This document shows, in pieces, positions 3,001 to 26,400 of a DNA stretch of 64,000 bases. The notes under the pieces are model-generated. The model was not told the DNA's origin and did no database searches. It saw only the letters and a program-made list of their open reading frames with translations. Source of the stretch: Macrostomum hystrix (lineage: Eukaryota > Animalia > Platyhelminthes); contig CATNEN010000041.1 of assembly GCA_950097015.1 (NCBI GenBank), forward strand, positions 2,480,001 through 2,544,000, given 5' to 3'. How positions within the stretch are numbered: the first letter of the stretch is position 1; each line of letters opens with the position of its first letter. Both the position numbers and the translations under genes were made by a program.

Positions 3001-5476
3001 ACAGAAGCTTTGTGATTCAAGAAGTCAAAATGCATTTTTTAGAGTTTGGAGTTCATTGAAAAAAAATTTGGCAAAACATAGAAAAGATACTTTACAAATT
3101 GGTACTTGAACATGTCTTTGACTAAGGTAGCATGGGACACAGTACTCATTTGTTTAATGTCAATGGTATACAATGAAAGCTGCAAAGAAGCAGAGAAAGC
3201 ACACTTTAAACAAGAATATCTGAAAAAGAACTTGACTAATTAGTGTGTCTAAGGTGTCATTGTGTAGCAGGGACATGCGTCAAACAGTTGTAGCAGTATC
3301 TGGTGAAATAATTGACCGATGCCTTTAGGTGAGGCAGAAATAGGATCATAAGACACATCCAAAAAAGCCATCAGAACACACTTTAAAAGTTTCAGTCAGA
3401 AAATGTCTATCGGGGAACCTATACATATTAAATACATTTTAAAATTTTATGTATTTTTCAACTATCTTTAATGCTTTCTGGTTGTAAAAAGTGTCTTTTT
3501 ATGGAAGTGCTTATTCCTACAGTCCTATGCCAATAATTTCAATTTTATCCACACGGATCTGTGCTGATAATTTTGTTTATCCACATGGCAGCTTGTTTGA
3601 ATAGGTCTACTTTCAAGTCCCTACCTATTCTTCTCTGAGCATAAGGCTTTTGCTTCAGAGTATAGTTTATAGTGTACACTATCAATGCATAGTGTAAAAT
3701 AATAACAATGATGTATAATATGTGTGACGAGTTTGGTGCTAAATAGAATTCTGCTGGTTGACTCGTATGATTTTCTTTTATAGACTTCTTACTTTTAAAG
3801 TCAATACAATTTAAATGAAAACATGTAACGATGACAAAAGATTTAGTAAGTTGCTATTAAAATAATTAAAAAGAATGACATTAATGTCAGTTAATGAATG
3901 TGTAGGTTGAAATGTAGAACACTGTCGTAACACACTGGCAACTTTGTCAATCTATTGGCTCAAGGGTTCAACAAAACGTTTAAACCCAAAAGGGCCTCGT
4001 TTCAAAGAACAGAACCGTGTGGATAAATTTGAAATTAATGGCACGGCATATTTATATAATAAAGAGTTTTAGACCTATTCATACAAGCTGCTGTGTGGAT
4101 AAGCAGAAAATTATAGGCACGGATCCATGTGGATAAAATTGAAATTATTGGCACGGGACCATGGGAATAAGCTCTGCCATTTTATATATTTGGTATACCT
4201 TATTTAAACTAATTTGTCAATTTTTTTGTTTCTTTTGTTCTAATTACATATAACTTTTCATGAATTGTGTATTCAAATTTTAGCATTTAAATAATTTTTT
4301 GGAAGTTCTAACCCAGCTCAAATGGCTTTTTGCATTATATCCTTTTAGTTTTTACTATCTGTCCTTGTGTCTTTGCCTAAAAAAAATTATTGCTCTAGAG
4401 TATTTACAGATATAGTTATAGGAAAGTAGAGGGCAGTAAAAACTATAGTATTTGGGTTATGGATTATTGTTATGGTTGACAGGGGCATTTATAGAAGGAC
4501 TATACTTCGGATTATACCAAGAAGGACACATTTAATGAATTTTCCTGTAACATTTAATTAAAATTTCTCAATACTAACTGATGAATCAGTCATTTTTCTT
4601 GCAAAAAAATCTAAACTATAATATTTTAAAAAGCAAATCTCAAAATTATTTTTTCTGGCATACTTAAAATAATTAAATATAAGTTACTGGTAGTTTGTTT
4701 AAATTTAAAATTAAATGTTCACGTTTAAAAAAAACTAGTTTGATTTGTTTATTTTTTTCCTTTGGCCATTTAACAAAGATGACATTTTTATGCATTGACA
4801 ATTACCAATGTGAGAATGTCCCTTATCTATCTAATATTTATTTAATAAACATGGGAAACAGAAAGACATAGATAAGGATGGAAATACTAGGTTTCAGTTT
4901 TGGTGAAATATTTAAGTGATTAATTCTAGAACTACTTAGCAGTGAGCAGTGAAATTATGTAGTGTTAATTAGCCCAAAAAATCTTATTTGCAACTAGAAA
5001 AAGCAAGTAGCTAGCAAATATAGCTCAGAAAAAAGTTTACAAACAAAAAAATTAAACCTTATTAGGCAGCAACTTGCACAAGCTGCACTGCTTCAGTTTA
5101 AATTTTCAAAGTATATAAATAGCTATTTTGCTTTAAGATATTACTAATAATATAAAAAATTTACAAAGCACGAAAACTTATTTTAGCTATGGCTACAATT
5201 TTGCTTACCATCTTGTTGCCCTGCCCTTTCTCGCCGAGGTTTTTTGGCACCAGATTGATCACCCGTGGCCGAATCTGGCTTGGCAGCTTGCTTAGCATCC
5301 TCAGGCTTTGCAGATAAAGGGGTCTTTTCAGATTTAGATTTTTTCTTCTGCTTTGCCTTGTCGCCTTTCTCCTCCATTGCGGCCTTAAGCAGTTCATCAG
5401 GATCCTCTACATCGTCCAGCAGGAAATCAAACTTGTTCCCCGTGACTACTGTAAAGCTGCTTTCTACTTCTGTCAT
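15..5476 (-). CDS. SERBP1: SERBP1/HABP4/Vig-family RGG RNA- and ribosome-binding protein; 5' part only, gene continues past the left edge
   Basis: Exon 5476-5209 ([22 protein letters not shown]..., donor GTAAGC, phase 1) splices in frame to exon 759-15 (acceptor CCCAG, donor GTAAGT). The second exon is RGG/FGG-rich and ends in [38 protein letters not shown], matching the HABP4_PAI-RBP1 signature (REFDRHSG...GSHNWG). Confidence 0.92.
2335..2552. mobile_element. hAT-type MITE, copy 1 (218 bp)
   Basis: TIRs CATACATGC...GCATGTATG; flanking 8-mers ATGTGCAT / ATGCGCAT (1 mismatch); reverse-complement homolog of 14002-14234. Confidence 0.85.
2684..3426. mobile_element. Foldback / non-autonomous DNA transposon with long inverted repeats
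   Basis: About 2837-2920 is the reverse complement of about 3310-3390; about 2931-2990 mirrors about 3172-3228; termini tgtatgggttccc / gggaacctataca. Confidence 0.7.
3501..4180. mobile_element. Second foldback/MITE-like element with ~110-bp inverted arms
   Basis: 3501-3610 (...ccaataatttcaattttatccacacggatc...gaataggtcta) is the reverse complement of about 4070-4180 (tagacctattc...tggataaaattgaaattattgg...ggaataag). Confidence 0.65.
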
Positions 5477-7952
5477 TTTCTGCGTGCCAGTTTTTTAGTT
5501 CAAACACATTTTTAATCCAAAGCTCTTGATTGTGATTAGTTTTTGTAAAAAGCGTGAAAAAGAACGTGTTGTTTTCAAATCGGCGCAGAAGTAAACAATT
5601 AAAACACACAAAACACATGAGATGATTCATGTAAGCTTTATTATTATTTTTTAATTGTACAACTGAAAATATATACTTAAGTTTTTCTAGTGATAATTTT
5701 TTAGTTTGGCGTTTAAAGGGTTTAATTTTTCCGCAACTTGTTGACCTAAGTGCATTGCAATTATGTGTGTCATTGTATATGCAAGGACCACTAGAAGTAG
5801 GACAGGAGACTTCGTTTCTTCGAGATAAATAGACGAAAATAAAATGAAGATAAATTATTAATGAATAAGGCTTACTAAAATTCGTTAAAGCAACAAGTTG
5901 TGCAAGATATACCAAACCATTGATATCTTTGGAGATTGGAGATCACCATTGGATCTGCTTCGTATAAAATGTTGTCAACATTTTCAATGGGAAAAGTGAC
6001 AATTTCCTACCTCGCTAGTGCATTCTTACGGAAAATCTACCTCTCATAAATTTTCGAAAAAATGAAGTGTTCTGTCATTCTTCATTTAGACGTCCTTGAA
6101 TATAGGCTGATATTATAAGTAGAAGGCATAAGCAAAGGAATCCTCTAGACTCCTCTGCTTCTAGTGGTTCTTGGTAGAAATTAGAGGAAATTTGCACTCA
6201 CGATCGGTACAAAACCAATTCCTTCCGGGCCAAATCAAGGACTACTCTAGTAACTCGTAACTGCTATAGTTACTAGATATTAAACTACTTAGTGCTCCTT
6301 TGGGCCATAATTCGCTGAGGATCTATTAAGGACCATTGAACAAAAAACAGTTTTCTCTTTTGTGTTCTCTTTTGTGATAGTATTTGGGCATTCGAGGATT
6401 TTGACCACAACCACGGATTTTTACAGAGTCTTATTGAACCTGCGCGTCAAAAAAATAATGCAAATTTGCATGGCTTTTTGAGGGTTGAGAACATTTTAAA
6501 GCCTCTAATATTTAGATAACTTATAATGTACATAAAATTTCATAGCTGCAATAAAGAACTGTGATGGAAATCCAAGGAATTCTTTTGGACACCCCTCGTA
6601 TCAGAACTCACTTTAATCGCCTTACCGCGGTAGGACTGCCAAGCCATTTTGCCGCCCGTTAATTTTTATATCAAGAGCCCGTCTGGGCAAAGGTCGGTGA
6701 CCAGCGAAGTCGGAGATGCAGGCACAATATAGGGTTGACGTGCTCATAAAGTAATTGAAGGCGTGACAAGGCCGCACTGAGGCACAGTGCAAATTCGTGT
6801 ATATGAAGTGTGCATGAAATACGCTGGTTTTTATGGGGAAAATCTGACCTTCGGCCAGAATCTTTGAATACCTCGCCGATCTGAAGGGCTGGCAACTTGA
6901 TTATTGTTTCAGAAGACGCGCAACAAAAAGTTAGTCTGTGTAATTCTTGAGTTTCGTTGCTCCATTGAAACATTCTTTATAAAATGCATGCGTGATCACG
7001 CTAGCCATCGTCTCTTGTCAACTGAAGCTGCCACCATTTGCCGTGACGATGCCGCGGTCATTTACCAGTCAATGCAGTAGATCTGATGCAGTACCCCTTG
7101 TATGGGCAGTCAATTGGAATTAATGCATGATTGCTGCTACAAGTTGAGCAATATCGGCCTCTGCAGAACCTGATGCCAATCTGCCCAAGCGCGCTAGGAC
7201 GCAGGTGGCGCAACTATGGAATGGCCGCACCGTGTCAAGCTGCCGGCTTTCGGCGCTCCGAGGAACAGGTGGATACCATGCAACACTTGCACACGCTTGG
7301 TAATGCAATTCCACTTAATGAAGCCTGTAGTTTTGTGGCATTAAAGTTTGGAATTAAGCAATCCCTATTTCTAACTTAACTAGGAAGAATAAAAAAAGAT
7401 AATTGAGAACACTCGTTAGGAGTGAGTGCTCAAAGAGCTCACAAAGCCTATCAATGCTTTGAGTCCTTCTATCATTGCAAAAAGGAAATAAAAAGTGCCA
7501 ATTTTTAGAAGCTGACAAACGAACTGCACAGCGGGGTGCACTCTCAGGTTAGAAAACTTGTCAATTTAAAAAACTTGTCATGTTTAAAGTTCCAGAAACT
7601 TCTTCGAGCTATTTGCACAGCAGCTTCATGCCGACTTCAGCGGGTCGAAAAAAGCAGATGCGCAAATAAAAGGGTTTCTAGATTGGAAGAGTAACAAATT
7701 GAGGAAAACACAAATGTGGGGCAAGAAGATTTAGCAACAATTCTTTTAATTGCTAAGTTAGTGAGCAAGCAAATATGTTCTTGACATCAATCCAGGCTTG
7801 TAAAATCAGCAAGCGAAGCACTTCATAGTTGACACGCGACAGGTGCGACAGCGGCCACACGCTGAGAGAAAAGGCAAAAATTCAGCATAAATTAAGGGCG
7901 AAAAATCCAGTCGTCCTTCAAGTCGGTGAAGTCACCTTTGAGAAGCTCAAAC

Positions 7953-10900
7953 ATGAAGTTCATTCTGCTGGCTGCATGCGCAGCGGTGTTCTGCACCCTC
8001 GCGGTAAGTCCTCAGTATATCATTTTAGGCTTTCGCATATCAGCTTAGAGACCTATCAATCGGAAAAAACGCGAAATTTGAATTTTAGCTATCAGCACCT
8101 CCACCGAATGCTGCAAACAAGCTGACGAAGCCGTCCGGACCGGCTCCAGCTAAGACTGCTGCACCAGCTGCGAATGCAAAGAGGCCGGCAAAGCCCACAG
8201 GACCCTGCACAAAACCCACAAGAAGAGAAGATCGCGGTAGACGCGACGAAAGGCGTCGCGACTCGAGGCGTCAAGAAAGGCGTTCCGACAGACGTGCCCG
8301 CACAAGGCGCGATGTGAGAACGAGAAGAAGCAACCGTCGTCGTGCTAGACGCAACCGCAGACGCTCCAACAGACGCGCCAGACGTAACCGCAGACGCTCT
8401 GCTAGACGCAACCGCAAGAGCCGCGATGTGAGAAAGAGAAGGGTTAGGATTAGGCTAGAGATTAGGGTTAGACGTAACCGCAGACGCTCTGCTAGACGCA
8501 ACCGCAAGAGCCGCGATGTCAGAAAGAGAAGAAGCAACCGTCGTCGTGCTAGACGCAACCCCAGACGCTCCAACAGACGCGCCAGACGTAACCGCAGACG
8601 CTCTGCTAGACGCAACCGCAAGAGCCGCGATGTCAGAAAGAGAAGAAGCAACCGTCGTCGTGCTAGACGCAACCGCAGACGCTCCAACAGACGCGCCATA
8701 CGTAACCGCAGACGCTCTGCTAGACGCAACCGCAAGAGCCGCGATGTGAGAAAGAGAAGCAATCGTCGTATTGCTAGACGCAACCGCAGACGCTCCAACA
8801 GACGCGCCAGACGTAACCGCAGACGCTCTGCTAGACGCAACCGCAAGAGCCGCGATGTGAGAAAGAGAAGGGTTAGGATTAGGCTAGAGATTAGGGTTAG
8901 ACGTAACCGCAGACGCTCGGCCAGACGCAACCGCAAGAGCCGCGATGTCAGAAAGAGAAGAAGCAACCGTCGTCGTGCTAGACGCAACCGCAGACGCTCC
9001 AACAGACGCGCCAGACGTAACCGCAGACGCTCTGCTAGACGCAACCGCAAGAGCCGCGATGTCAGAAAGAGAAGAAGCAACCGTCGTCGTGCTAGACGCA
9101 ACCGCAGACGCTCCAACAGACGCGCCAGACGTAACCGCAGACGCTCTGCTAGACGCAACCGCAAGAGCCGCGATGTGAGAAAGAGAAGCAATCGTCGTAT
9201 TGCTAGACGCAACCGCAGACGCTCCAACAGACGCGCCAGACGTAACCGCAGACGCTCTGCTAGACGCAACCGCAAGAGCCGCGATGTCAGAAAGAGAAGA
9301 AGCAACCGTCGTCGTGCTAGACGCAACCGCAGACGCTCCAACAGACGCGCCAGACGTAACCGCAGACGCTCTGCTAGACGCAACCGCAAGAGCCGCGATG
9401 TGAGAAAGAGAAGGGTTAGGATTAGGCTAGAGATTAGGGTTAGACGTAACCGCAGACGCTCTGCTAGACGCAACCGCAAGAGCCGCGATGTCAGAAAGAG
9501 AAGAAGCAACCGTCGTCGTGCTAGACGCAACCGCAGACGCTCCAACAGACGCGCTAGACGTAACCGCAGACGCTCGGCCAGACGCAACCGCAAGAGCCGC
9601 GATGTCAGAAAGAGAAGAAGCAACCGTCGTCGTGCTAGACGCAACCGCAGACGCTCCAACAGACGCGCCAGACGTAACCGCAGACGCTCTGCTAGACGCA
9701 ACCGCAAGAGCCGCGATGTCAGAAAGAGAAGAAGCAACCGTCGTCGTGCTAGACGCAACCGCAGACGCTCCAACAGACGCGCCAGACGTAACCGCAGACG
9801 CTCTGCTAGACGCAACCGCAAGAGCCGCGATGTGAGAAAGAGAAGCAATCGTCGTATTGCTAGACGCAACCGCAGACGCTCCAACAGACGCGCCAGACGT
9901 AACCGCAGACGCTCTGCTAGACGCAACCGCAAGAGCCGCGATGTCAGAAAGAGAAGAAGCAACCGTCGTCGTGCTAGACGCAACCGCAGACGCTCCAACA
10001 GACGCGCCAGACGTAACCGCAGACGCTCTGCTAGACGCAACCGCAAGAGCCGCGATGTGAGAAAGAGAAGGGTTAGGATTAGGCTAGAGATTAGGGTTAG
10101 ACGTAACCGCAGACGCTCTGCTAGACGCAACCGCAAGAGCCGCGATGTCAGAAAGAGAAGAAGCAACCGTCGTCGTGCTAGACGCAACCGCAGACGCTCC
10201 AACAGACGCGCTAGACGTAACCGCAGACGCTCGGCCAGACGCAACCGCAAGAGCCGCGATGTCAGAAAGAGAAGAAGCAACCGTCGTCGTGCTAGACGCA
10301 ACCGCAGACGCTCCAACAGACGCGCTAGACGTAACCGCAGACGCTCGGCCAGACGCAACCGCAAGAGCCGCGATGTGAGAAAGAGAAGCAATCGTCGTCG
10401 TGCTAGACGCAACCGCAGACGCTCCAACAGACGCGCCAGACGTAACCGCAGACGCTCTGCTAGACGCAACCGCAAGAGCCGCGATGTGAGAAAGAGAAGA
10501 AGCAACCGTCGTCGTGCTAGACGCAACCGCAGACGCTCCAACAGACGCGCCAGACGTAACCGCAGACGCTCTGCTAGACGCAACCGCAAGAGCCGCGATG
10601 TGAGAAAGAGAAGGGTTAGGATTAGGCTAGAGATTAGGGTTAGACGTAACCGCAGACGCTCTGCTAGACGCAACCGCAAGAGCCGCGATGTCAGAAAGAG
10701 AAGAAGCAACCGTCGTCGTGCTAGACGCAACCGCAGACGCTCCAACAGACGCGCCAGACGTAACCGCAGACGCTCTGCTAGACGCAACCGCAAGAGCCGC
10801 GATGTGAGAAAGAGAAGAAGCAACCGTCGTCGTGCTAGACGCAACCGCAGACGCTCCAACAGACGCGCCAGACGTAACCGCAGACGCTCTGCTAGACGCA

Positions 10901-11181
10901 ACCGCAAGAGCCGCGATGTGAGAAAGAGAAGGGTTAAGATTAGGGTAGAGATTAGGGTTAGACGTAACCGCAGACGCTCTGCTAGACGCAACCGCAAGAG
11001 CCGCGATGTCAGAAAGAGAAGAAGCAACCGTCGTCGTGCTAGACGCAACCGCAGACGCTCCAACAGACGCTCCAGACGTAACCGCAGACGCTCGGCCAGA
11101 CGCAACCGCAAGAGCCGCGATGTCAGAAAGAGAAGAAGCAACCGTCGTCGTGCTAGACGCAACCGCACACGTTCCAACTGA
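7953..11181 (+). CDS. Secreted, extremely arginine-rich tandem-repeat protein (~1047 aa), orphan
   Basis: Exon 1 7953-8003 encodes MKFILLAACAAVFCTLA (signal-peptide-like), donor GTAAGT. 85-nt intron ends TTTTAG. Exon 2 8089-11181 is in frame (phase 0): LSAPPPNAANKLTKPSGPAPAK... then Arg-rich repeats to TGA; 8089 is in frame with track ORF 8314. Confidence 0.8.
8314..11170 (+). repeat. Coding tandem array of 114-, 111- and 90-nt units
   Basis: Unit A is RRSNRRRARRNRRRSNRRARRNRRRSARRNRKSRDVRK (114 nt); unit B is one codon shorter; unit C is RRVRIRLEIRVRRNRRRSARRNRKSRDVRK (90 nt). All unit lengths are multiples of 3. Confidence 0.95.
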
Positions 11182-13414
11182 TGCGCAACTGAAAGTGCAA
11201 CTGACTGTTCACTCGTAATTAGGTTTTCGGACTGAAGCTTTGGCTATGCTAGCTGTGTTGTGGTTAAGGGATTAAAATATACGTACCTCTTGAAACTTAA
11301 CGCTGCTTTTGTCTTCTCCTTTCTTTGGGCCGTTGATACGTTACATAGGTTCGATACTTTGATATGATACGTTATGTTACATTTTTGTCGAAGTTACTTC
11401 CGCAAATGTTTAAAAACAGATACAAAACTACAACTGTATACGTACTCAACGCTTACGACCAGGTGTCCTTTGAAGGCATGCAGTGACCATAGCGTATCAT
11501 CAGTGGGATGACATGAATATGACCGAGGAGTCGCCCCGAGGAAGGCGTTTGTTCATGCCTTCAAACGGAGTGGATTGGTGGGGCACCTAGCGCAAAACGG
11601 CAGGTCCTGCCTTGCCACCGGCAGAGCCGCCGTCAGGTTGCCCTGGGTGCTTGTTGCGCCAGCCCAGACGAGGCTTGCGTGCGTGGTAGACGCGGTCTGA
11701 TGATCGTAGTGAAAATCCACCAAAGACTCTTGGGTTTGAGCCCCCACAAAGTACCCACAGCGCGCCTGATCTGGGCCAGGATTGCCAAGGTTTTTTTTAA
11801 CTTTGGCTTCATTTGGCCTAAATAACATCAGGCTAAATGTAGTCATGTGTGTATTTAATTTTTTTATGAAAGAAAGAGTTATATATTTTCCAATGTGTCA
11901 TTTTACTGCTTAACGATTATCCGATTATAACGATTGTAGTTGAACTAGCTTATTCCCGTTTTTAAGTGTGTGGTTTCGAGGAATTGTGTAAATGGATAAG
12001 TGAGAAGGTTGAAAGATATTTGAAAATTATTTATATAGCTTTTTGATAACCCATAAAGTAAAATTATACATAGTTTTAGTAGTTACTATTTCTTCGGATA
12101 ATAATCAACTTGCTCAAAACTAGAGCACAAATCGACATACGAACATTTAAATTATTAATAACCAGTATGTCTAGTGTAGGATGTAGTTAGAGCGCTGTAG
12201 TCTAAGATTTGTTATTTTTTAAGAAAAAATCTGTTGAGGAATATTTACAAGCATCATTCACAGGCTTCTTAAAAATAAAATTTGAAAATGTTTTTAGCAG
12301 ATATGCAGCTAAGACTAACCCTATTGGCTATCATTGCTGTCCTTAAATTTAATTGCAATATATCAGAGAACTAAAAGTTTATATTATATTCTTACTTATG
12401 TAGGGCCCAGCTACATATATTTATTTATAGATATTTGGCTAGCTATAGCTAATTTTGATTGTTATCTAGTTATTTTTTAGATATAAAGTTTTACTCTGTG
12501 TCTTATTGTTATGAAAATTAATCATACAAGGCATTTTTTACTTTCTATGTATGGTGTGCTTGCTTTTATCTTATTGCACAGTAGCAATTGACTCTGGAGT
12601 TTTACTTTAGCTACTAATTGCATTATACATTTGATAATAAGAATTGAATCACTATATACACCAATATCAAATGCTTAGTAGTAATATAGATAGCTTGAAT
12701 ATTTGGTTTATTGAATGCTAGTTCATATTGGTCTTTGCTTAGAATAACCTGTTATCTTAGGCCTATGGGATTGTCAAAAAATCAGAACCAATGAAGTTAG
12801 CTAATAAACATTATATTTTATAGTGTAGGTGCAATGAATTTTTTAGTCACATATATATAGGTGCCAAGATTTACTAAATAAACAGTTATGGTATTCTTTT
12901 TGAATCATTTGTTAAACAGTTTTTCTGAAAATGTTCATTTTAAATCAATGTAACGACTTGAATTTTTTAAAAATTTATAAAGGTTGCTTTTTTGCACTTT
13001 TTAAGGCTGCTTCTGGGGTTCTGAGGAACTTGTCTATGGCAAATGTTCAGAGTGGGAGGAAATAAAAGCAAAATGGTTGACATGCTTGGGAGTTTTCAAA
13101 AGGGATGAGCTGGTTAGTGGGAGAGGAAGTATTGGTTTTTGTATGCTAAGTGAGACTTTTTTCAAGCAATCTAAGACTGAATAGCAAAAACACTATTGTC
13201 TATGGCCACCCCTCACTGCAGCCTAGCTTTTTGGGCATGCGCCTTGCAAGCAAAGTGAGAATTTTTTTAACACTTAGTGAGAACCATATTGAAAACAAAG
13301 GGGTAGTTTTACGAAATTACAAAATGTACTGTCAGAAACAATATATTTGGAAAAGGATATGCAGGAACACAACAAAACAAGTGGTACAAAAATTGTTGAT
13401 AATGTTATAGGCAT

Positions 13415-14708
13415 TCAAATAAAAGGTTGCATGTTGATACACTGAGCAAACTTTCGAGTGCAGTAAAGCTCCCAGCCTGCAATCTTGTGCGGAGTAATGA
13501 CATGCAGCGATTCTCTTCCAAGCCAATCCATCAGCATGTATTGCCAATCATCTCGTTCCTTAGCTGCAATTGTGGGCTCAACAAGGCAACGCTTGATCTC
13601 ACTCTTAAGAGCACTGTGCGCCATCTCCACAGGATTCAAAAATGGCAAGTATGCCAGTAAAATTTGCAGACAAATGAGATCCTCAAACTGCTCAGGTATC
13701 TCAATCCCTTGGTGAAAATCTGGACCATCGAAAATGACTTGTCTGCTGCTAGGAGCATTGGCCTGTATGATGTTCGCCAGTTCCAAAATAAACTGCTGAA
13801 ATCTCTCTCGTGTCTGACCACCTCGCTGCAGCGTACAGTGGACAAGACCCAAGTCAGATGACACTGCCAAGCACATTGTCATGTTGGGACCCCTCTGCAT
13901 TACCACAGTTTGTCGCACAGGCTGGCCAACTCTTGCTCGACCATGTGTCCTTCTTGTCTATAGGTTGTAGGCAGTCTCATTGATAAACACAGCCAGGTCA
14001 TCATACATGCTCAACACCCGGCCGGGTAAAATGAGGCCAAGCAAGGTAAGTTGCAAAAACCAATTGACCAAGCGCAAAAAAATCAAAGGGGGGGACCAAG
14101 GGACAAAAAAGGAAGGCGTGAAGAAAAGGAAAAAGGGGAGAGAAAAAGAGAGCAAATGAGAGCAAACTAAGTCGTAAATAGAGCAAAAACTAAGTTGCAC
14201 GGCCGGCTAAGATTTAGGAGGTTGCGCATGTATGCAGGTCATTCACAGGCAGTCCCGTCATCATCATAGCATCTAGTCGCGCCTCACTTGTATCACATCC
14301 TGGGTATTCGCAGCAAGCTTCACGTTGGCATCCTTGGTGGCAACTTTCAGTGAGATAAGCATGGAGTTCATTGCTCTAGCAATGGTGGATTCAGAGATAG
14401 CCGGCTTTTGTGGCAACTCCAAAGTCAGTTTTCTCTGCACATCAGTCAGAGTAACAGGGATTTTGCTCAACTATCTGCTCAACGGCTTTCTGCATTTCAG
14501 CATCCATTTTTGTTGACCCCGGCTTGCAGCCACCATGTTGCAACGCATGGATCTCACCAGTAGCTGCATAGCGACTCCATATCTGATAGGCAGTCTTCTT
14601 GTTCAGATTAAGGATTTTGGACGCAGTCAAAATTGATTAACCATCTTTGATGGCATTGACCAGGTGCTCTCTATCCTCGTTGCTTGTTAAACACAGTTGA
14701 TTTGCCAT
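13415..14708 (-). pseudogene. IS630/Tc1-like DDE transposase pseudogene (stops, frameshifts, MITE insertion)
   Basis: HTH-like N-terminus (ASKILNLNKKTAYQIWSRY; ISESTIARAM). After excising the MITE: VFINETAYNL*TRRTHGRA (FIDE-like), VIFDGPDFH (DNA.FH-like) and LAYLPFLNPVE (PYSP.LNPIE-like). Confidence 0.85.
14002..14234. mobile_element. hAT-type MITE, copy 2 (233 bp), inserted in the transposase
   Basis: TIRs CATACATGC/GCATGTATG; perfect 8-bp TSD CAGGTCAT at 13994-14001 and 14235-14242. Confidence 0.9.
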
Positions 14709-15916: not shown

Positions 15917-18900
15917 ATGGCTGAAACTCACACTATTCTGCTACTGTGCAAAGGCCTCATTCAGATCTCTCTGTTCTTTGGTAAGAGTTTGAGATTACGT
16001 TGTGCATAGTCTTACTTTTGTTGGTTTAAAATAGATTTCAGTGCCCTGAAAAATTCACTTTCAATTGCAGCGAGCCTCATTCGTTACAATGTATTCTCAT
16101 TTGTCTACCTGCTGTTTCTGCTTGTCAGCCCATTCGCTTCATTTGATAACAGAGGCAAGTATATGGTTTGAGTGTACCATTGGAGTATCTGGGATTGAGT
16201 ACACATTGAGACCATTGCAGAATCTGGGATTGAGTACTCAGTGAGACCATTGGAGTATCTGGGAATGAGTACACAGTGAGACCATTGGATTATCTGGGAA
16301 TGAGTACACAGTGAGGTCATTGGAGAGTCTGGGAATGAGTACACATTGAGAACATTGCAGAATCTGGGATTGAGTACTCAGTTAGAGTGGTTTGGATTGA
16401 GTATCCGTCTTCTACAAACTTGCAGGCTGTTTCTTGGCCTTCATCATCGCCCTGGTTGCCTGCAGCTCAGCTTTCACCCTGTGCCACGTGGCCTTCCAAA
16501 CAGTGCTGGCTGCCCACCAGCCCTACGGCAGCCTCCTGTCGGACTGTGAGTAAATCAGAGGCTTCATGGTCTCTCTGTTATCTCTGAATCTAATTGACAT
16601 CAGCATCTATTCCACAATTCTCCCTATTCCTGTCACTACTTTCCCTATCCCGCTATCCTGTATCTATTCGAACACCTCAATCCCACTATCTATATCCACG
16701 CTATCCCTATCCACGCTAGCCGATCCCCAGAATCCCTTATGCCTCGCTAAACCCATCCCAACATCTCTATCCTGCTCTCCCATCGGATGTGCACAATGCG
16801 CATGCGCAAGTGCTCAAGCAGCTCACCGCCTTGCATCCAATGCCGCAGGTGAGTCGGACCTGCTGTGGCGCCAGATCGGTCTGCAGCCGCTCCACCGGGC
16901 TGAGTTCTACCACATCGCCCGGCTGCTGTGCCCGGAGCCGCTGACGCTGCTGGTCTCAGTCGGCATGCTCGCCGCCATCTGGCGCCACCGGGACGAATTC
17001 TTCCCGGCCGCCGTTGGCGACGCCTGCCCCGACTGCGGCGTCCTGGACGGCTACCGGCGTAATCTCAAGCGAATGGGCGACTGGCTGATGTTCGTGCTGT
17101 TTCTGGCGCTCATGTGCTCGGCCGCCATCTGCCTGCCCTGCCTGCTGTCCAGCGTCTACCTGTTGTCCTTCCTGCTGGCCGCGCTGCTCTGGACCGCCGG
17201 CCGGCTGGACTTCCGTCGGCGCGGCCTTCGCTGGCAGCGGCGCTGGCTGGCCCTGTACACGGCCTGCCACCTGGCCTGCATCTTCCTGTACCAGTTCCCG
17301 GCGTCGCAGAAATTTGAAAGACTCAGAGCGAACTCAACGGCTGCCAGGTGAGAATTTGGTGGAGAGCCAGGGAGCCTGGCCGCAGTTTGACTGTGTGAAT
17401 GACCATAAGAATGAGCAGGATAATGACCATAAGAATGAGCAGGATAATGACCATAAGAATGAGCAGGATAATGACCATAAGAGTGAGCAGGATAATGAAC
17501 ATAAGAATGAGCAGGATAATGACCATAAGAATGAGCAGGATAATGACCATAAGAATGAGCAGGATAATGACCATAAGAGTGAGCAGGATAATGAACATAA
17601 GAATGAGCAGGATAATGACCATAAGAATGAGCAGGATAATGACCATAAGAGTGAGCAGGATAATGAACATAAGAGTGAGCAGGATAATGAACATAAGAAT
17701 GAGCAGGATAATGATAATATGAATAAGCAGGATAATCACCATAAGAATGAGCAGGATAATGACCATAAGAGTGAGCAGGATAATGACCATAAGAGTGAGC
17801 AGGATAATGACCACAAGAATGAGCAGGATAATGACCATAAGAATGAGCAGGATAATGACCATAAGAGTGAGCAGGATAATGAACATAAGAATGAGCAGGA
17901 TAATGACCATAAGAATGAGCAGGATAATGACCATAAGAATGAGCAGGATAATGACCATAAGAGTGAGCAGGATAATGAACATAAGAATGAGCAGGATAAT
18001 GACCATAAGAATGAGCAGGATAATGACCATAAGAGTGAGCAGGATAATGAACATAAGAGTGAGCAGGATAATGAACATAAGAATGAGCAGGATAATGATA
18101 ATATGAATAAGCAGGATAATCACCATAAGAATGAGCAGGATAATGACCATAAGAGTGAGCAGGATAATGACCATAAGAGTGAGCAGGATAATGACCACAA
18201 GAATGAGCAGGATAATGACCATAAGAATGAGCAGGATAATGACCATAAGAATGAGCAGGATAATGAACATAAGAATGAGCAGGATAATGACCATAAGAAT
18301 GAGCAGGATAATGACCATAAGAGTGAGCAGGATAATGAACATAAGAATGAGCAGGATAATGACCACAAGAATGAGCAGGATAATGACCATAAGAGTGAGC
18401 AGGATAATGAACATAAGAATGAGCAGGATAATGACCATAAGAATGAGCAGGATAATGACCACAAGAATGAGCTGGGGAGTAAGAATATGCAGGAGAATGA
18501 CCATATGTATGACCTGTTGAATGACTAGATAAATGACTATGTAAATGGCTTGATGTAGGACCAATTAAATGGCTTGATAAATGACTATTTAAATGGCTTG
18601 ATGAATGATCAATTTAAGTGGCCTAATGAATGACCAGGTAAATTGCTTTATAAATGCTTAATTGTGTGGCTTAATGAATGACCAGGTAAAAAGCTGGTAG
18701 AATAAAAAGGTAAATGGCTTTATGAACAACCCATTACGTGACTTTATGAATGACCAATTAAGTAGCTTAATGAATGTTCAGTTATATGGCTTGCTGAATG
18801 ACCAGGTAAATTGCTGATTGAGTGACTCTGGAAATGACTCAGTCCATGAGCACATAAACAACCCTGTTGTACACCGCAGGCTGCTGGGCCTGCACTACCT

Positions 18901-21900
18901 GATCCAGTCCAACTGTTCGTCTGCCCAGGTGCATTTTGCCAGCTCGGTGCGCAGCTCTGAGTACGCCTCGCCACTGCTCATCCTAGTCTTCTATTTCTAC
19001 CTGGCCCTGCAGATTCACCTGCACGATCGGCGGCCGCACAGGAGTGATGTGAGTGCAGTCTGTGACTGCCAGCTTGGCTTGTGTTCAGTAAACATATATC
19101 AGCCTGCTTGTTCAGCTGCTGCAGTTGCAACTATAAGATGCTTTAGCTTGATAGCACTGACTGTCAGCTGTAGCTGTGGCAGTGGGACTTGCTGCTTGTC
19201 TCCTCGCAGCAAAGATTCGAGTTTAAGGGTATTTTTGATAGACCAGCCTGCATTTGTTTCCGTTTTAATACAGCAGCTTTGAAACACGTGTGCAGCCTGT
19301 CGCTGCACTGTCGCTAAAACCAACCAAAATTATTTGTTATGGCTGCTGTAAAAACTGGGACTATACATTCATTCTAGACCAGAATAATTTGAATCCTTTC
19401 TGCATCAAACATGTACTTATAAACCTAACAGTTGCTATGCATATATTAACTGATCCCCAACAGTTGCCATGCATATATTAACTGATCCCCAACAGTTGCC
19501 ATGCAGATATTAACTGATCCCCAACAGTTGCCATGCAGATATTAACTGATCCCCAACAGTTGCCATGCAGATATTAACTGATCCCCAACAGTTGCCATGC
19601 AGATATTAACTGATCCCCAACAGTTGCCATGCAGATATTAACTGATCCCCAACAGTTGCTATGCAGATATTAACTTATCCCAAGCTACTTACATTGGACC
19701 TGTACTAACTCGTCGTGCAGGTGTTGTTTAATTAGACTTAGAGTTATTACTGGAGTAGTTACGTGCTAGCCGCCTGCTCTGTTGCCATGAGTAGTGCAGT
19801 GCTGTAGAACGCAGCCGCTGCGCTAGCAAGCACTAATACCAGTTTGTGTTTTTGTTCGTCTATCCGTTCCTGCATTGACAATCGTTGCACAAGAACTGAA
19901 CTCGCGTTCTGACCTTTTATGCCCTATTAAAATCCTTAAATAATAAAAATACGCCTCTGAGACACGAATGTCAGTGAGTCAGAGACACATGTCAGACACG
20001 GATGTCAGTGAGTCAGAGACACATGTCAGACACGGATGTCAGTGAGTCAGAGACACATGTCAGACACGGATGTCAGTGAGTCAGAGACACATGTCAGACA
20101 CGGATGTCAGTGAGTCAGACACATGTCGGACACGGATGTCAGTGAGTCAGTGACACATGTCAGACACGGATGTCAGTGAGTCAGAGACACATGTCGGACA
20201 CGGATGTCAGTGAGTCAGAGACACATGTCGGACACGGATGTCAGTGAGTCAGTGACACATGTCAGACACGGATGTCAGTGAGTCAGAGACACATGTCGGA
20301 CACGGATGTCAGTGAGTCAGAGACACATGTCGGACACGGATGTCAGTGAGTCAGTGACACATGTCGGACACGGATGTCAGTGAGTCAGTGACACATGTCA
20401 GACACGGATGTCAGTGAGTCAGAGACACATGTCAGACACGGATGTCAGTGAGTCAGTGTCACATGTCAGGCACAGAGAAGTCAAGGGACAGAGAGGGCCA
20501 GTGCCGAGCTTCTGCATTGCGTCAATACCTGCTCCCAGTATGCTTATGAGCTAATTAAAGTACTGCCAAGCATCTCCACCTGCTTTTCCTTCCACTCCGC
20601 TTCGCCTCCCAGTACAAAAGCATCCTGACTGTGGACATACCTCATGGGGACTTCAGCGCCAGCGAGCCCATGGTAAGATGCTCTGCGGTGACGGGCCGGC
20701 CTCCTTAACTGTGTTGCGGTATCTGACTGCTCTGTCACGGGTTTTACTTGGTTCTGCATGTCGTGCCGAATTTTTGTTTGCAGTTTGATTAAACTTTTAT
20801 TGATTCATAACTTCATATCTATTTGAATTTGCTGAAAATATGAAGCTCGATTTAGCATTGATCTGTTCTCTTAGTTTAACTGTTACCTGCACTATGTGAG
20901 CTGGACTATTAACTGTAACCTGTCACTCTCATTGACACATTGACTCTCACCAGTCACTCTCATTGACACATTGACTCTCACCAGTCACTCTCATTGACAC
21001 ATTGACTCTCACCAGTCACTCTCATTGACACATTGACTCTCACCAGTCACTCTAATTGACACATTGACCTCACCAGTCACTCTCATTGACACATTGACCT
21101 CACCAGTCACTCTTATTGACAAATTGACTCTCACCAGTCACTCTTATTGACAAATTGACTCTCACCAGTCACTCTTATTGACAAATTGACTCTCACCAGT
21201 CACTCTTATTGACACATTGACTCTCACCAATCACTCTCATTGACACATTGACTCTCACCAGTCACTCTCATTGACACATTGACTCTCACCAGTCACTCTC
21301 ATTGACAATGCCCTCTCGCGAATGCCGCCGATTTGATTCCAGAGCCCCGGAGCCCACTGTCACAGTGCCGGCTTCAAGCAGCCGCAGCTGCACTCGCATC
21401 CCGCACATCCGCCGGAGGTCTGTCTTGTGCGCCTTTGTTGTCAGTGGCAACCAAACCCATCACTTTTATTGTGCTCGCAGCCTTCCCGCCAGCTAGCATC
21501 TAGAACTGTGTTTGCTTATTGTGCCCCTGCTTTTGTGTTTTCTTAATTTTTTCAGGGCTAGCTGATGCCATATCCCAAAACTTCCCAAGTCTGCACAATT
21601 CACTACTTCCCTCCTTCACTTCCCGGTTTAAAATCTTCCGATCCGCTTTTTAATATGCACATTAAAAAATTCCCTCTTTTAAAATCTTCCCACCCAAAAC
21701 TCCCCACTTTATTATCCTCCAACCCAAAACTCCCCACTTTTTATATTCCAACCCAAAACTCCCCACTTTTTTATATTCCAACCCAAAACTCCCCACTTTT
21801 TATATTCCAACCCAAAACTCCCCACTTTTTATATTCCAACCCAAAACTCCCCACTTTTTATATTCCAACCCAAAACTCCCCACTTTTTTATATTCCAACC

Positions 21901-23289
21901 CAAAACTCCCCACTTTTTTATATTCCAACCCAAAACTCCCCACTTTTTTATATTCCAACCCAAAACTCCCCACTTTTTTATATTCCAACCCAAAACTCCC
22001 CACTTTTTTATATTCCAACCCAAAACTCCCCACTTTTTTATATTCCAACCCAAAACTCCCCACTTTTTATATTCCAACCCAAAACTCCCCACTTTTTATA
22101 TTCCAACCCAAAACTCCCCACTTTTTATATTCCAACCCAAAACTCCCCACTTTTTATATTCCAACCCAAAACTCCCCACTTTTTATATTCCAACCCAAAA
22201 CTCCCCACTTTTTTATATTCCAACCCAAAACTCCCCACTTTTTTATATTCCAACCCAAATCTCCCCACTTTTTTATATTCCAACCCAAAACTCCCCACTT
22301 TTTTATATTCCAACCCGAAAATTCTCCTTTTAAATGTTCTCATCCGAAACTTCCTACCCGAAATTTCCCCATTCTCTAATATTCCCAGCCGAAACTTCCC
22401 CTTTTAAAACTTTCCACCCAAAGCTCCCCCTTTTTAATCTTCCCACTCGAATCTGCCACCATGAGCTTCCTAATTTACGTAGCGTCGCCCATACTGTGTT
22501 GGTTATCCCAAGATACCTAGTCCTGTTGTTTTTTATTAACCACACCGAAACTTACAAGTAATTCAGTAACTAACAGACAAAATCTGTGTGGTTCAGTGTA
22601 TCAGGTCAGTGTATAGCACCAATTGTTGTTGCAACCGCTTCAGTGTCTTTGTAAAGTGCTCACATAGCGTTAACATTTTGTTAAACTTGCTTCTAAAATC
22701 AGAAAATTTCCGTTAGTGTAAATCAATAGAATTTAATGACTCAGTGCACGTTTCATATTGCTGCTGTGACCTGTGTCTGGGCCATGAAATAATGAAAGTA
22801 ATTAGCACCTGCCGATTATTATTATTATTATTGATTACTCACAATCGACTCACAAGCGTCTGTGCACCGTTGCTAAGCAACCAGTGCCGGGCCACTAACC
22901 CCTAAACCATGCCGCACCGCTGTTGTGCAACTTGCAGCTCTGTAGGAGAGTTCAAGCTCGGGCGCGGAAGCATTCCGTGAGTAGCCAGCCACCCACCTCA
23001 CTCCGCTGCGGCCTGATTGGCTGTTGCTCACCCATTGGTTTGCTTTTCACCAAATTCTTCCTACATTGTCTTGCAAACTTGAGTTTTTTGCCGGTAATAG
23101 GGGCTAGTAGAAACTGCTAATTGATGATACTGGATAAACAGTTCACCTTGATGCTCTTGGATACTATTCCTTTGTAAATGTTTAATTCTTACACATATAC
23201 CTGTTTGCTTGTGTTCCTTGTGCCTGGATTGAGCAAAAGACAAAAAGCTGTGTCTATGCTGTGTATATATGCTGTTTTTTGTCAGTCCC

Positions 23290-23326
<37 letters not shown>

Positions 23327-23341
23327 GCCTGTCTGTCTGCC

Positions 23342-23414
<73 letters not shown>

Positions 23415-23417
23415 GCC

Positions 23418-23454
<37 letters not shown>

Positions 23455-26400
23455 GACACCGTACTATCAGAACTGTTGTTTTACTTCAGCATGCAGATAT
23501 AATTAACAAATTTAAATACAGTTAATTTGTTTTTCTCACAGGTACATTTGAGCTACGAGTGCAAATATTAAGTCGCAGCCTTTTAATTAGCCTAGTATTT
23601 TTGTTTTGGAATGGGCTGCTTGCTTGTAGCATGTTTATGTTTCCTCGGAGCCTGATTTGCCTATTCTGTGCGAGAGGCAGCTATTGCTTGTTTAGAAGCA
23701 ACACGCTTTCCCCAATTAGTTATCCTACTCCAGTTCTCCTCAAAATGATTCCCAATTCCCAGTCTTCCCTTTGTCCCGCCAACGCAGTGCCTGATCGACG
23801 CGCCCTTCCCAATCCTGACGGAGTCGATCTTGCTGCGCCAGCAGGGCCCGCGCCGCACCACCTCGGAGCCGCTGGCCCTGCTCACCATGCCGCCGCGAGG
23901 CTCAGCCGCCGCCCCGATGGCCAACAGCGTCTCCGACGCCGCTTCCGACATCGCCGCCGAGTTTTCAGCCGCCGCCTCCACGCTTGACGATACGCCGTCA
24001 TCCAACGCTGCAATCAACGCCGCCGTAGCCGCCGCAGCCGCCGTCGTCGCTGCCGCGTCCGCCGCCTCGCCGCAGCCGCCGCCTCCACCTCCGCCGCCGC
24101 CGCCAGCCAGGGCGCCATCGCTGGAGAGCTCCACGTTGCGGCACGAGGCCAAGCTGACGTGGCTGCTGTACACCCTGAGCGACCCACTCGTGAAGCTCTT
24201 CCACCGCCTGCGCCAGTTCCTCATGGGAGCCAGCTACATCCTCACCCTGGTCAGCATGATGGCCTGGAGCGTCACGTACGTGTCCTTCTGCACCCTGCCA
24301 TTCCTGTTGCTCTCCTGCCTGCTCTGGCTGTCTCCCGGCACCCGGCGTTTCACGCTCGGCCTGTCGCCACTGCTGGTCGTGTACTCCACCGGCCTGCTGC
24401 TAGCCAATTACGCCTTCAACTTCAACCTGCCTGAGGTCTACCTGGCCAGCAAGAACGAGTCCTCCTTTGCGCAAATCGGACTACAGGTGCGGCTCCACCA
24501 CACTGCCTACTGCCTAACTGTCTACCAATGCTCTACCCCATTGTCTACTCGTGCTCTACCCAACTGTCTACCATGGCCCTACCCCAATATCTACCACGGC
24601 CCTACTCCACTGTCTACCATGGCTCTACCCCACTGTCTACCATGGCTCTACCCCACTGTCTACCATGGCTCTACCCCACTGTCTACCATGGCTCTACCCC
24701 ACTGTCTACCATGGCTCTACCCCACTGTCTACCATGGCTCTACCCCACTGTCTACCATGGCTCTACCCCACTGTCTACCATGGCTCTACCCCACTGTCTA
24801 CCATGGCTCTACCCCACTCCGCCAGGTGTACGAGGCGCCTATGGTGACCTTTGCTGCCCAGCTCACATTCTGCTGCGTGTTCTACTTCACCCTGTGGACA
24901 TTTCTGTCCGAGCGGCGCCAGGGCGTCAGCCACGACACCCGGGCTGCGCTGGAGCTCTACCACCTGCGCGGACACTTGCTGAACCGGCGTCGGCGCAAGA
25001 CCATGGAGACCCTCATCATTGAGGTCATGTCCAAGTACTCGCTCATCATCTGCTGCACCTTCTGGGTGCTCATGTGCTCCCGCTCCGTGGTCAACATCTC
25101 CCACATCATCGTCATGGCCATCTTCCTTTACTTCATCATCACCTTCAGAGTGAGTTTTCGTTCAGGCTTGCAGAGCTTAGGCCGTCCTGAATATGAAGGG
25201 GCAGCCAAACCTGAAGTAGGAGGGGTAGCCAAACATCAGTAGGAGGGGTAGCAAAACCTGAAGTCGGAGGGGTAGCTAAGCCTGAAGTAGGAGGGGTAGC
25301 CAAACCTGAAGTCGGAGGGGTAGCTAAGCCTGAAGTAGGAGGGGTAGCCAAACCCGAAGTCGGAGGGGCAGCCAAACCTGAAGTAGGAGGGGTAGCCAAA
25401 CCTGAAGTAGGAGGGGTAGCCAAACCTGAAGTCGGAGGGGTAGCCAAACCTCAGTAGGAGGGGTAGCCAAACCTCAGTAGGAGGGGTAGCCAAACCTGAA
25501 GTCGGAGGGGTAGCCAAACCTGAAGTCGGAGGGGTAGCCAAACCTGAAGTCGGAGGGGTAGCCAAACCTGAAGTAGGAGAACTCTAGTCAGACTTAAAAG
25601 CAAACTTTTGCTGCTCACTAGCCTATTGATACCTGGCTCCCATCCGGTCCAAAGACTTAGCTGCCGACTGTCCTGCATTTCAGCTGTTCTATTCGTTCTG
25701 GCGACGGCAGCTGATCTTCTGCTTCTGGGGCATCATGCTGTACTCCATGCTGACCCTGCTGCTCATATATGCCTACCAGTTTCAGAGTGTGCCAGATTTC
25801 ATTCATCGACTCACTAAAATTGAGTCGGCCACGTAAGTTGCGCTTCTCTAGCGTGCGTTCTAAAATTTCTCCAAAGCCCTTTCTGATTGGTTGTATGCCC
25901 CAGAGCCCCGTCTGATTGGTTGTTTGCCCCAGAGGCCTGTCTGATTGGTTGTATGCCCCAGAGCCCCGTCTGATTGGTTGTTTGCCACAGAGGCCTGTCT
26001 GAATGGTTGTATGCCCCAGAGCCCCGTCTGATTGGTTGTTTGCCCCAGAGGCCTGTCTGATTGGTTGTTTGCCCCAGAGTCCTGTCTGATTGGTTGTTTG
26101 CCCCAGAGGCCTGTCTGATTGGTTGTATGCCCAGAGCCCCGTCTGATTGGTTGTTTGCCCCAGAGGCCTGTCTGATTGGTTGTTTGCCCCAGAGGCCTGT
26201 CTGATTGGTTGTATGCCCCAGAGCCCCGTCTGATTGGTTGTTTGCCCCAGAGGCCTGTCTGATTGGTTGTATGCCCTAGAGCCCCGTCTGATTGGTTGTT
26301 TGCCCCAGAGGCCTGTCTGATTGGTTGTTTGCCCCAGAGGCCTGTCTGATTGGTTGTATGCCCTAGAGCCCCGTCTGATTGGTTGTTTGCCCCAGAGGCC

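Follow-up and report, generated by a model that had tools for sequence, protein, structure and literature searches.

The stretch of DNA analysed here, hereafter the window, comprises 64,000 nucleotides (nt) from the flatworm Macrostomum hystrix (assembly GCA_950097015.1, contig CATNEN010000041.1, positions 2,480,001 to 2,544,000 of the forward strand), and the subject of this work is a gene in it that encodes a protein more than half of whose residues are arginine. The coding sequence consists of two exons on the + strand (exon 1, 7953-8003; exon 2, 8089-11181), and translation of the spliced sequence gives a product of 1047 amino acids (aa). It can be seen from Table 1 that a short first exon with a signal-type peptide is joined over a small intron to a long second exon, which opens with a spacer rich in Pro, Ala and Lys and continues into an array of arginine repeats. 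The mixed-charge stretch that stands between the spacer and the array is probably made of decayed repeats.

That the locus is a real, spliced and transcribed gene follows from transcript contigs of four public runs (X1-X4), which were aligned to positions 6800-8330. The contigs of X1, X2 and X4 omit exactly the 85 bases 8004-8088, which have GT..AG ends, with 57-73 nt aligned on the shorter side of the joint. Contig depth on the exons is 40-56 and drops to zero both inside the intron and across 6956-7891, about 900 nt of upstream flank, and the contigs are therefore complementary DNA (cDNA) and not genomic carry-over. The 5' untranslated region (UTR) of 22 nt is free of ATG throughout 7930-7952, the start codon stands in the context caaacATGa, and the TATA-like sequence ATAAATTAA may act as the promoter of the gene. 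At the other end, a fraction of 0.20 (about 120 nt) of the words of 11160-11760 is present in each of three runs; this word content, taken with the ATTAAA signal behind the stop codon, would put the 3' end of the transcript near 11280-11300.

Table 1 Features of the arginine-repeat gene and of its neighbourhood in the window
Feature	Position	Strand	Remarks
TATA-like ATAAATTAA	7888..7896	+	Read from the letters; 34-42 nt upstream of the contig 5' ends 7930/7931
5' UTR	7930..7952	+	Contigs of two runs begin at 7930/7931 (X4 record 12 at 7930, X1 record 1 at 7931)
Exon 1, coding part; 17-aa signal-type peptide MKFILLAACAAVFCTLA	7953..8003	+	Translation
Phase-0 intron, 85 nt, GTAAGT...TTTTAG	8004..8088	+	Skipped in contigs of X1, X2 and X4
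Pro/Ala/Lys-rich spacer, 44 aa	8089..8220	+	Translation; holds the sole Cys of the chain beyond the signal
Mixed-charge Arg/Asp/Glu stretch, 32 aa	8221..8316	+	Translation
Arginine repeat array	8317..11178	+	Degenerate first unit, 25 full units (114, 111 or 90 nt), truncated last unit
Telomere-like segment defining the B units, second of six	8869..8902	+	(TTAGGG)n match at 26/34 positions; in frame VRIRLEIRV
Stop codon TGA	11179..11181	+	Exon 2 is open for 1030 codons up to TGA
3' UTR (probable), ATTAAA at 11271-11276	11182..11300	+	First + strand AWTAAA past the stop
HABP4/SERBP1-like gene (PF04774, PF16174)	11-829 and 5183-5476	-	Upstream
DDE_3 transposase remnant	13415-13918	-	Downstream
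Multi-exon Piezo gene (PF24871, PF23188)	16566-35575	+	Downstream

An earlier note on this DNA, made from the letters and a track of open reading frames (ORFs), had predicted a 51-nt upstream exon with a phase-0 GTAAGT...TTTTAG intron and had named the 8003/8089 junction as the point to check by RNA sequencing. Both translation and transcript contigs agree with that model, as the junction is joined in the contigs of X1, X2 and X4 and the locus is transcribed. Its remark that the ORF track shows just a GTG start is also accurate, the listed ORF on this frame beginning at GTG 8314. Genes of this kind are thus hidden from short-read transcriptomes, where only the first 330 nt assemble, and from ORF tracks, where the frame begins at an internal GTG.

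Taken by itself, an open frame through such an array is uninformative, as two of the six frames (+1 and -2) are stop-free across it. This observation, along with a genome rich in tandem arrays that carry open frames, allows for an explanation in which the locus is a transcribed satellite with an accidental open frame, its RNA being either non-coding or subject to translation that aborts on the polybasic tract; polybasic tracts are known to stall ribosomes. However, the GT..AG intron sets the strand as +, on which +1 is the sole open frame (stops across the array: 0 in +1, 18 in +2 and 95 in +3), and the same canonical intron links an ATG and a predicted signal peptide in phase to the array. 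The sole Met codon of the whole reading frame is this exon-1 ATG, which is also the first ATG of the transcript, and a stop codon with a poly(A) signal stands right behind the array.

The variation inside the array argues against an accidental frame as well. The unit lengths of 114, 111 and 90 nt are each divisible by three and all indels are in frame. Five of the six variants common to at least two units are synonymous third-position changes (GCC/GCT, TCT/TCG, GCT/GCC, GTC/GTG; P = 0.005 against an expectation of 25%), while the singletons, confined to one unit each, are nonsynonymous. Changes at the start of exon 2 in a paralogous transcript, described below, are synonymous too. Codon usage points the same way, as the 548 Arg codons are distributed over CGC (216), AGA (213; 39%), CGT (91) and AGG (28), with CGA and CGG absent altogether, an avoidance that extends to the 18 Arg codons of the non-repeat part; in the neighbouring genes, CGA and CGG together make up 31% of Arg codons and AGA 6%. 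AGA and CGC/CGT mostly alternate along the array, and the unusual pattern could either spread the load across two pools of transfer RNA (tRNA) or reflect the origin of the repeat. The arginine frame, +1, is the coding one, and a satellite with a frame open by chance is regarded as highly improbable.

Between samples, the transcript contigs differ at two positions of exon 2, namely 8133 G>A, which is synonymous, and 8225 G>A, which replaces Arg by Lys. The start of this exon (8093-8330) was also found in a sediment metatranscriptome, X3, at about 98.7% identity and with both of these differences, the same as in the 'organism A' runs, so that this transcript can be detected in environmental material.

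The 1047-aa product is composed of 548 Arg (52.3%), 118 Asn (11%), 99 Ser (9.5%), 83 Ala (8%), 60 Lys (5.7%) and 41 Val, together with minor residues, and is devoid of Trp, Tyr and His; of its three Cys, two are found in the signal, as are both Phe, and one in the leader. Past residue 17, the chain has a mass of about 134 kDa and holds 607 Lys and Arg against 40 Asp and Glu, which amounts to a net charge of about +567. The array contains about 27 units in all, counting the degenerate first and the truncated last, and its 25 full units fall into 15 of 38 aa, 4 of 37 aa and 6 of 30 aa, every one of which ends in SRDV. Unit A, of 38 aa, has 22 Arg, 2 Lys and 1 Asp, that is, 58% Arg. Tandem Repeats Finder reported a period of 114 with 95-99% matches plus higher-order periods, and weaker periods of 33 and 57 nt were seen within single units. 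Recounting thus bore out the earlier figures for length, for the Arg content and charged residues of unit A, for a net charge of several hundred positive, for a Pro/Ala/Lys leader with one Cys and for some 26-27 repeats with neither aromatic residues nor Cys.

Between runs of at least two basic residues, the repeats carry just N, SN, A, SA and SRDV, plus VRIRLEIRV in the six B units of 30 aa (8431-8520, 8860-8949, 9403-9492, 10060-10149, 10603-10692 and 10921-11010). The segment that defines the B units is telomere-like, and the agreement of its second copy with (TTAGGG)n, 26 of 34 positions at 8869-8902, was attained by 4 of 20000 random windows. It seems that a telomere-like tract was captured into the coding repeat and then amplified along with it.

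There are 357 RXXR motifs in the chain, and 113 of the form RX[KR]R. Membrane activity and antimicrobial action are established for oligo-arginines and for protamine. The extreme Arg content, these motifs, a signal-type leader and a transcript abundant enough to assemble from the sediment metatranscriptome would all be in keeping with defence or antimicrobial action by a polycation shed into the mucus or onto the body surface, either whole or after partial cutting by convertases into cationic membrane-active or cell-penetrating pieces. The repeats, however, offer no hydrophobic or amphipathic cargo, and VRIRLEIRV is released by the B units only. An amphipathic helix built from an 11-residue sub-repeat, with N, S and A on one face, was tried as a candidate and rejected, as the spectrum of the non-basic positions peaks at 133 degrees and not at the approximately 100 degrees of a helical face. 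Complete processing would leave mainly free Arg and dipeptides. A defensive function of this sort is therefore deemed unlikely. The suggestion of the earlier note that the product is a polyprotein from which furin-type cutting frees cationic peptides is weak for a related reason, since cutting at the 113 RX[KR]R sites leaves no peptide cargo.

Entry of the chain into the secretory pathway through a cleavable signal peptide is predicted from sequence rules. The n-region is MK and the hydrophobic core is FILLAACAAVFCTL (about 14 residues), the mean Kyte-Doolittle hydropathy of residues 3-17 being 2.6, and T-L-A occupies positions -3 to -1, so that T at -3 and A at -1 satisfy the signal-peptidase rule. 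This is the only hydrophobic segment of the protein, the best 15-residue hydropathy elsewhere being -0.1, and the C-terminus, which reads RNRTRSN, bears no retention motif. The mildly charged 44-aa spacer may hold the polycation off the signal while the translocon is being engaged.

The signal-type leader recurs in a paralogue. Record 4 of run X2 (aligned at 7963-7999) is a transcript with an identical exon structure that reads MRLLLLAACAAVFCTLV and continues as LSAPPPNAA, and it is more abundant than the transcript of the arginine-repeat gene (depth 99 vs 40). The changes in its signal are conservative and hydrophobic-for-hydrophobic in the core (K>R, F>L, I>L, A>V), and the start of its exon 2 shows three differences, all of them synonymous.

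The leader bears directly on whether the protein could instead be a nuclear or nucleolar Arg-rich binder of nucleic acid, such as a condenser of sperm chromatin or an arginine-rich-motif binder of RNA, whose N-terminal stretch is inactive as a signal. The product shares with protamines an Arg content of 50-60%, the presence of Ser/Arg dipeptides, a scarcity of acidic residues and the lack of aromatic ones, and its own Arg content of 52-58% with Arg-Ser dipeptides would suit such a binder. The heptad ARRNRRR, which we take to be reminiscent of viral arginine-rich RNA-binding helices, offers a lead in the same direction. A single-sequence AlphaFold2 model of the first 258 residues of exon 2 may be counted on this side also, as it shows two long helices, 45-153 and 159-257, with a predicted local distance difference test (pLDDT) score above 90 and a break at the one Pro variant of the repeats; the spacer has pLDDT below 55 and no secondary structure. 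These helices were discounted as a stable fold, because a chain of such charge cannot keep a helix without counter-ions, and the model is best taken to suggest that the repeats, being free of Pro and Gly, would be helix-compatible once neutralised.

Protamines, in contrast, are short and nuclear and have no signal peptide, whereas the present protein, at 1047 aa, is about ten times as long and carries a hydrophobic signal-type N-terminus. The sole start codon sets a hydrophobic segment of 15 residues at the extreme N-terminus, which is conserved in the paralogue by the hydrophobic-for-hydrophobic changes given above, and no match to protamine or other Pfam families was obtained. A nuclear or nucleolar role is consequently considered very unlikely. 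The expectation of the earlier note that the protein carries a signal peptide accords with its n-region, core and -3/-1 residues, and the distinction it drew from nuclear protamines stands on the hydrophobic N-terminus from the only start codon, the lack of a protamine family match and the length.

Homology searches returned blank results. The leader, the whole protein and a 114-aa N-terminal piece found no relative in word-indexed protein searches, and phmmer found none against 1.84 billion representatives. A Pfam scan with E up to 1 gave no family, protamine families included; PDB sequences gave no match, nor did metagenome loci, whether searched by protein or by exact repeat DNA, and the best score of an ESM Atlas features search, 0.78, lies in the noise range. 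Blank homology searches are weak evidence, because the composition correction of HMMER may hide Arg-rich relatives. No description of such an arginine-rich secreted protein was found in the flatworm literature on Macrostomum and on rhabdites, and the motif and leader do not occur in the supplements of several papers, including an in situ screen of seminal-fluid transcripts (PMC5977470), the files of that screen containing few sequences.

A gene that is lineage-specific, multi-copy and fast-evolving and has no homologue found follows a pattern common in reproductive proteins. The product might accordingly belong to seminal fluid, to a cement or shell gland or to sperm granules and form condensates with polyanions of the ejaculate, the eggshell or the egg glue; it would share the secretory features of the reading preferred below, and its protamine-like composition suggests a reproductive setting. 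Its motif and leader are missing from the seminal-fluid screen just mentioned, a weak counter-argument given the few sequences there. A reproductive secretion appears a doubtful explanation on the whole.

The reading that we favour, tentatively and at a probability a little short of even, is that the product serves as a bulk polycation: in gland vesicles it would condense with a polyanion and lend the secretion its dense core or its cohesion. On this proposal, the gene is a two-exon, stand-alone member of a small lineage-specific family that would encode a polycation of the secretory pathway. A cleavable signal peptide would bring the chain to the endoplasmic reticulum (ER), and the weakly charged Pro/Ala/Lys spacer would emerge ahead of some 950 residues of Arg repeats. 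The chain would then be packed into the vesicles of gland cells with a polyanion, whether sulphated or acidic glycans or acidic proteins, and complexing driven by charge would make it the condensing, dense-core or cohesive component of the secretion.

The proposal draws on systems described in flatworms. In Macrostomum lignano, the secreted Lys/Arg-rich regions of the adhesive protein Mlig-ap1 span more than 3,600 aa and are reported to have isoelectric points above 14, and adhesive vesicles lose their dense core upon knock-down of Mlig-ap1; attachment of the animal is blocked by polyanions and release by cations, and the basic regions of Mlig-ap1 have been assigned a cohesive function along with charge-based interaction with negatively charged molecules (PMC6410801). 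In Minona ileanae, a separate protein rich in Gly, Arg and Lys, Mile-ap3a/b, is required for the electron-dense core of the adhesive vesicles, which is lost upon knock-down, and independent KR-rich proteins have been proposed as building blocks able to fuse to proteins of the mucus type (PMC6745481). Planarian rhabdites contain sulphated glycosaminoglycans (PMC5450325), and polyanion partners therefore exist in flatworm secretions.

With reference to these systems, the protein resembles Mlig-ap1 in being of the secretory type, by prediction, and in having as its bulk an extremely basic low-complexity repeat, its net charge being +567. Mlig-ap1, however, has 5,407 aa with a core of C-type lectin, vWD, C8, TIL and EGF domains, whereas the arginine-repeat protein has no Pfam domain and so falls outside the ap1 family on the domain core. 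The repeats of Mlig-ap1 mix Lys, Arg, Pro and Gly, while those described here have an Arg:Lys ratio of 9:1 and neither Pro nor Gly. The likeness to Mile-ap3a/b lies in a polycationic low-complexity product with a gene of its own, apart from the domain-bearing ap1 core; Mile-ap3a/b belongs to another flatworm order, its sequence is only partly known, and its unit is the tripeptide GRK, in contrast to the Arg units of 38 aa described here.

A further parallel comes from outside the flatworms. In the sandcastle worm, polybasic cement proteins are packed into granules together with a polyphosphoserine protein as their partner. The putative arrangement here is alike in that a secreted polycation and a polyanion would form a condensed phase in gland granules, but the sandcastle worm proteins are small, rich in Lys, His, Gly and Tyr and dependent on 3,4-dihydroxyphenylalanine (DOPA) chemistry, whereas the arginine-repeat protein is free of aromatic residues.

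Several points weigh against a condensing polycation of gland vesicles. Both the gland-cell origin and the condensing or cohesive role would be drawn by analogy, and the status of the signal peptide is a call based on rules. A highly basic chain immediately after a short hydrophobic core could disturb the orientation of the signal, and the 113 RX[KR]R sites could expose the chain to cutting by proprotein convertases. The repeats are without the Lys, Gly and Pro character of ap1 and ap3. As to a specific likeness to Mlig-ap1, the repeat comparison covered the published 14-aa antigen peptide, for which the best match of 7/14 lies within the 7-9 that 200 shuffles reach and is no better than composition would give. 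The transcript contigs, in turn, end within the first repeat unit, as is to be expected of short reads, and transcript coverage is that of the leader side, the array being beyond contig reach.

The earlier idea of a bioadhesive or coacervate component remains plausible. It is supported through analogy with the secreted Lys/Arg-rich adhesion proteins of flatworms (PMC6410801, PMC6745481); the globular domain core is absent, and the match to the ap1 antigen peptide is no better than that of shuffles. The description of the locus as the strongest candidate for an undescribed system in the window was overstated, as the family is undescribed but the theme to which it belongs is not: secreted flatworm polycations have been published, and what is not described in the literature searched is a stand-alone family with 52% Arg, poor in Lys, free of Pro and Gly and built of 38-aa units.

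A further possibility, rather unlikely in our estimate, is that the chain leaves the cell uncut as a rod-like, Pro/Gly-free and helix-prone polyarginine of some 950 residues with a job unlike that of known adhesion proteins. Such a product might be a giant cell-penetrating or nucleic-acid-binding agent against prey, microbes or mating partners, or else the charge partner through which a gland secretion is set or released. If so, special means would be called for to translate and translocate a chain of +567 and to shield it from convertases.

Should the protein be made as predicted, few long secreted chains on record would match it in arginine density. It would raise the questions of how ribosomes cope with 548 Arg codons among 1047, how the chain crosses the ER membrane and escapes the convertases that recognise RX[KR]R, and which polyanion neutralises it in the vesicle. 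Temporary adhesion in flatworms serves as a model for reversible underwater glues, and the charge-based scheme of attachment and release is still without some of its components; for one of these, a polyarginine family encoded on its own in such an animal would be an obvious candidate.

The neighbours of the gene (Table 1) are unrelated to it, from which we conclude that the arginine-repeat gene stands alone and does not form the beginning of a larger adhesion gene. The possibility that it forms the 5' end of a larger ap1-like gene was also discarded on what lies behind the array, namely a stop codon and ATTAAA, then the DDE transposase remnant and Piezo. Upstream, a short transcribed piece at 6839-6934 was seen in X2 and X4, whose loose end past 6934 resembles a splice joint to sequence beyond 6800-8330; the piece could be a repeat, or else an exon belonging to a different gene. 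Downstream, where the Piezo gene begins, a long tandem array (17314-18528) is open on both strands, its + frame reading as an acidic/His repeat (NDHKNEQD...), and several Piezo introns or inserts bear further tandem arrays with open frames.

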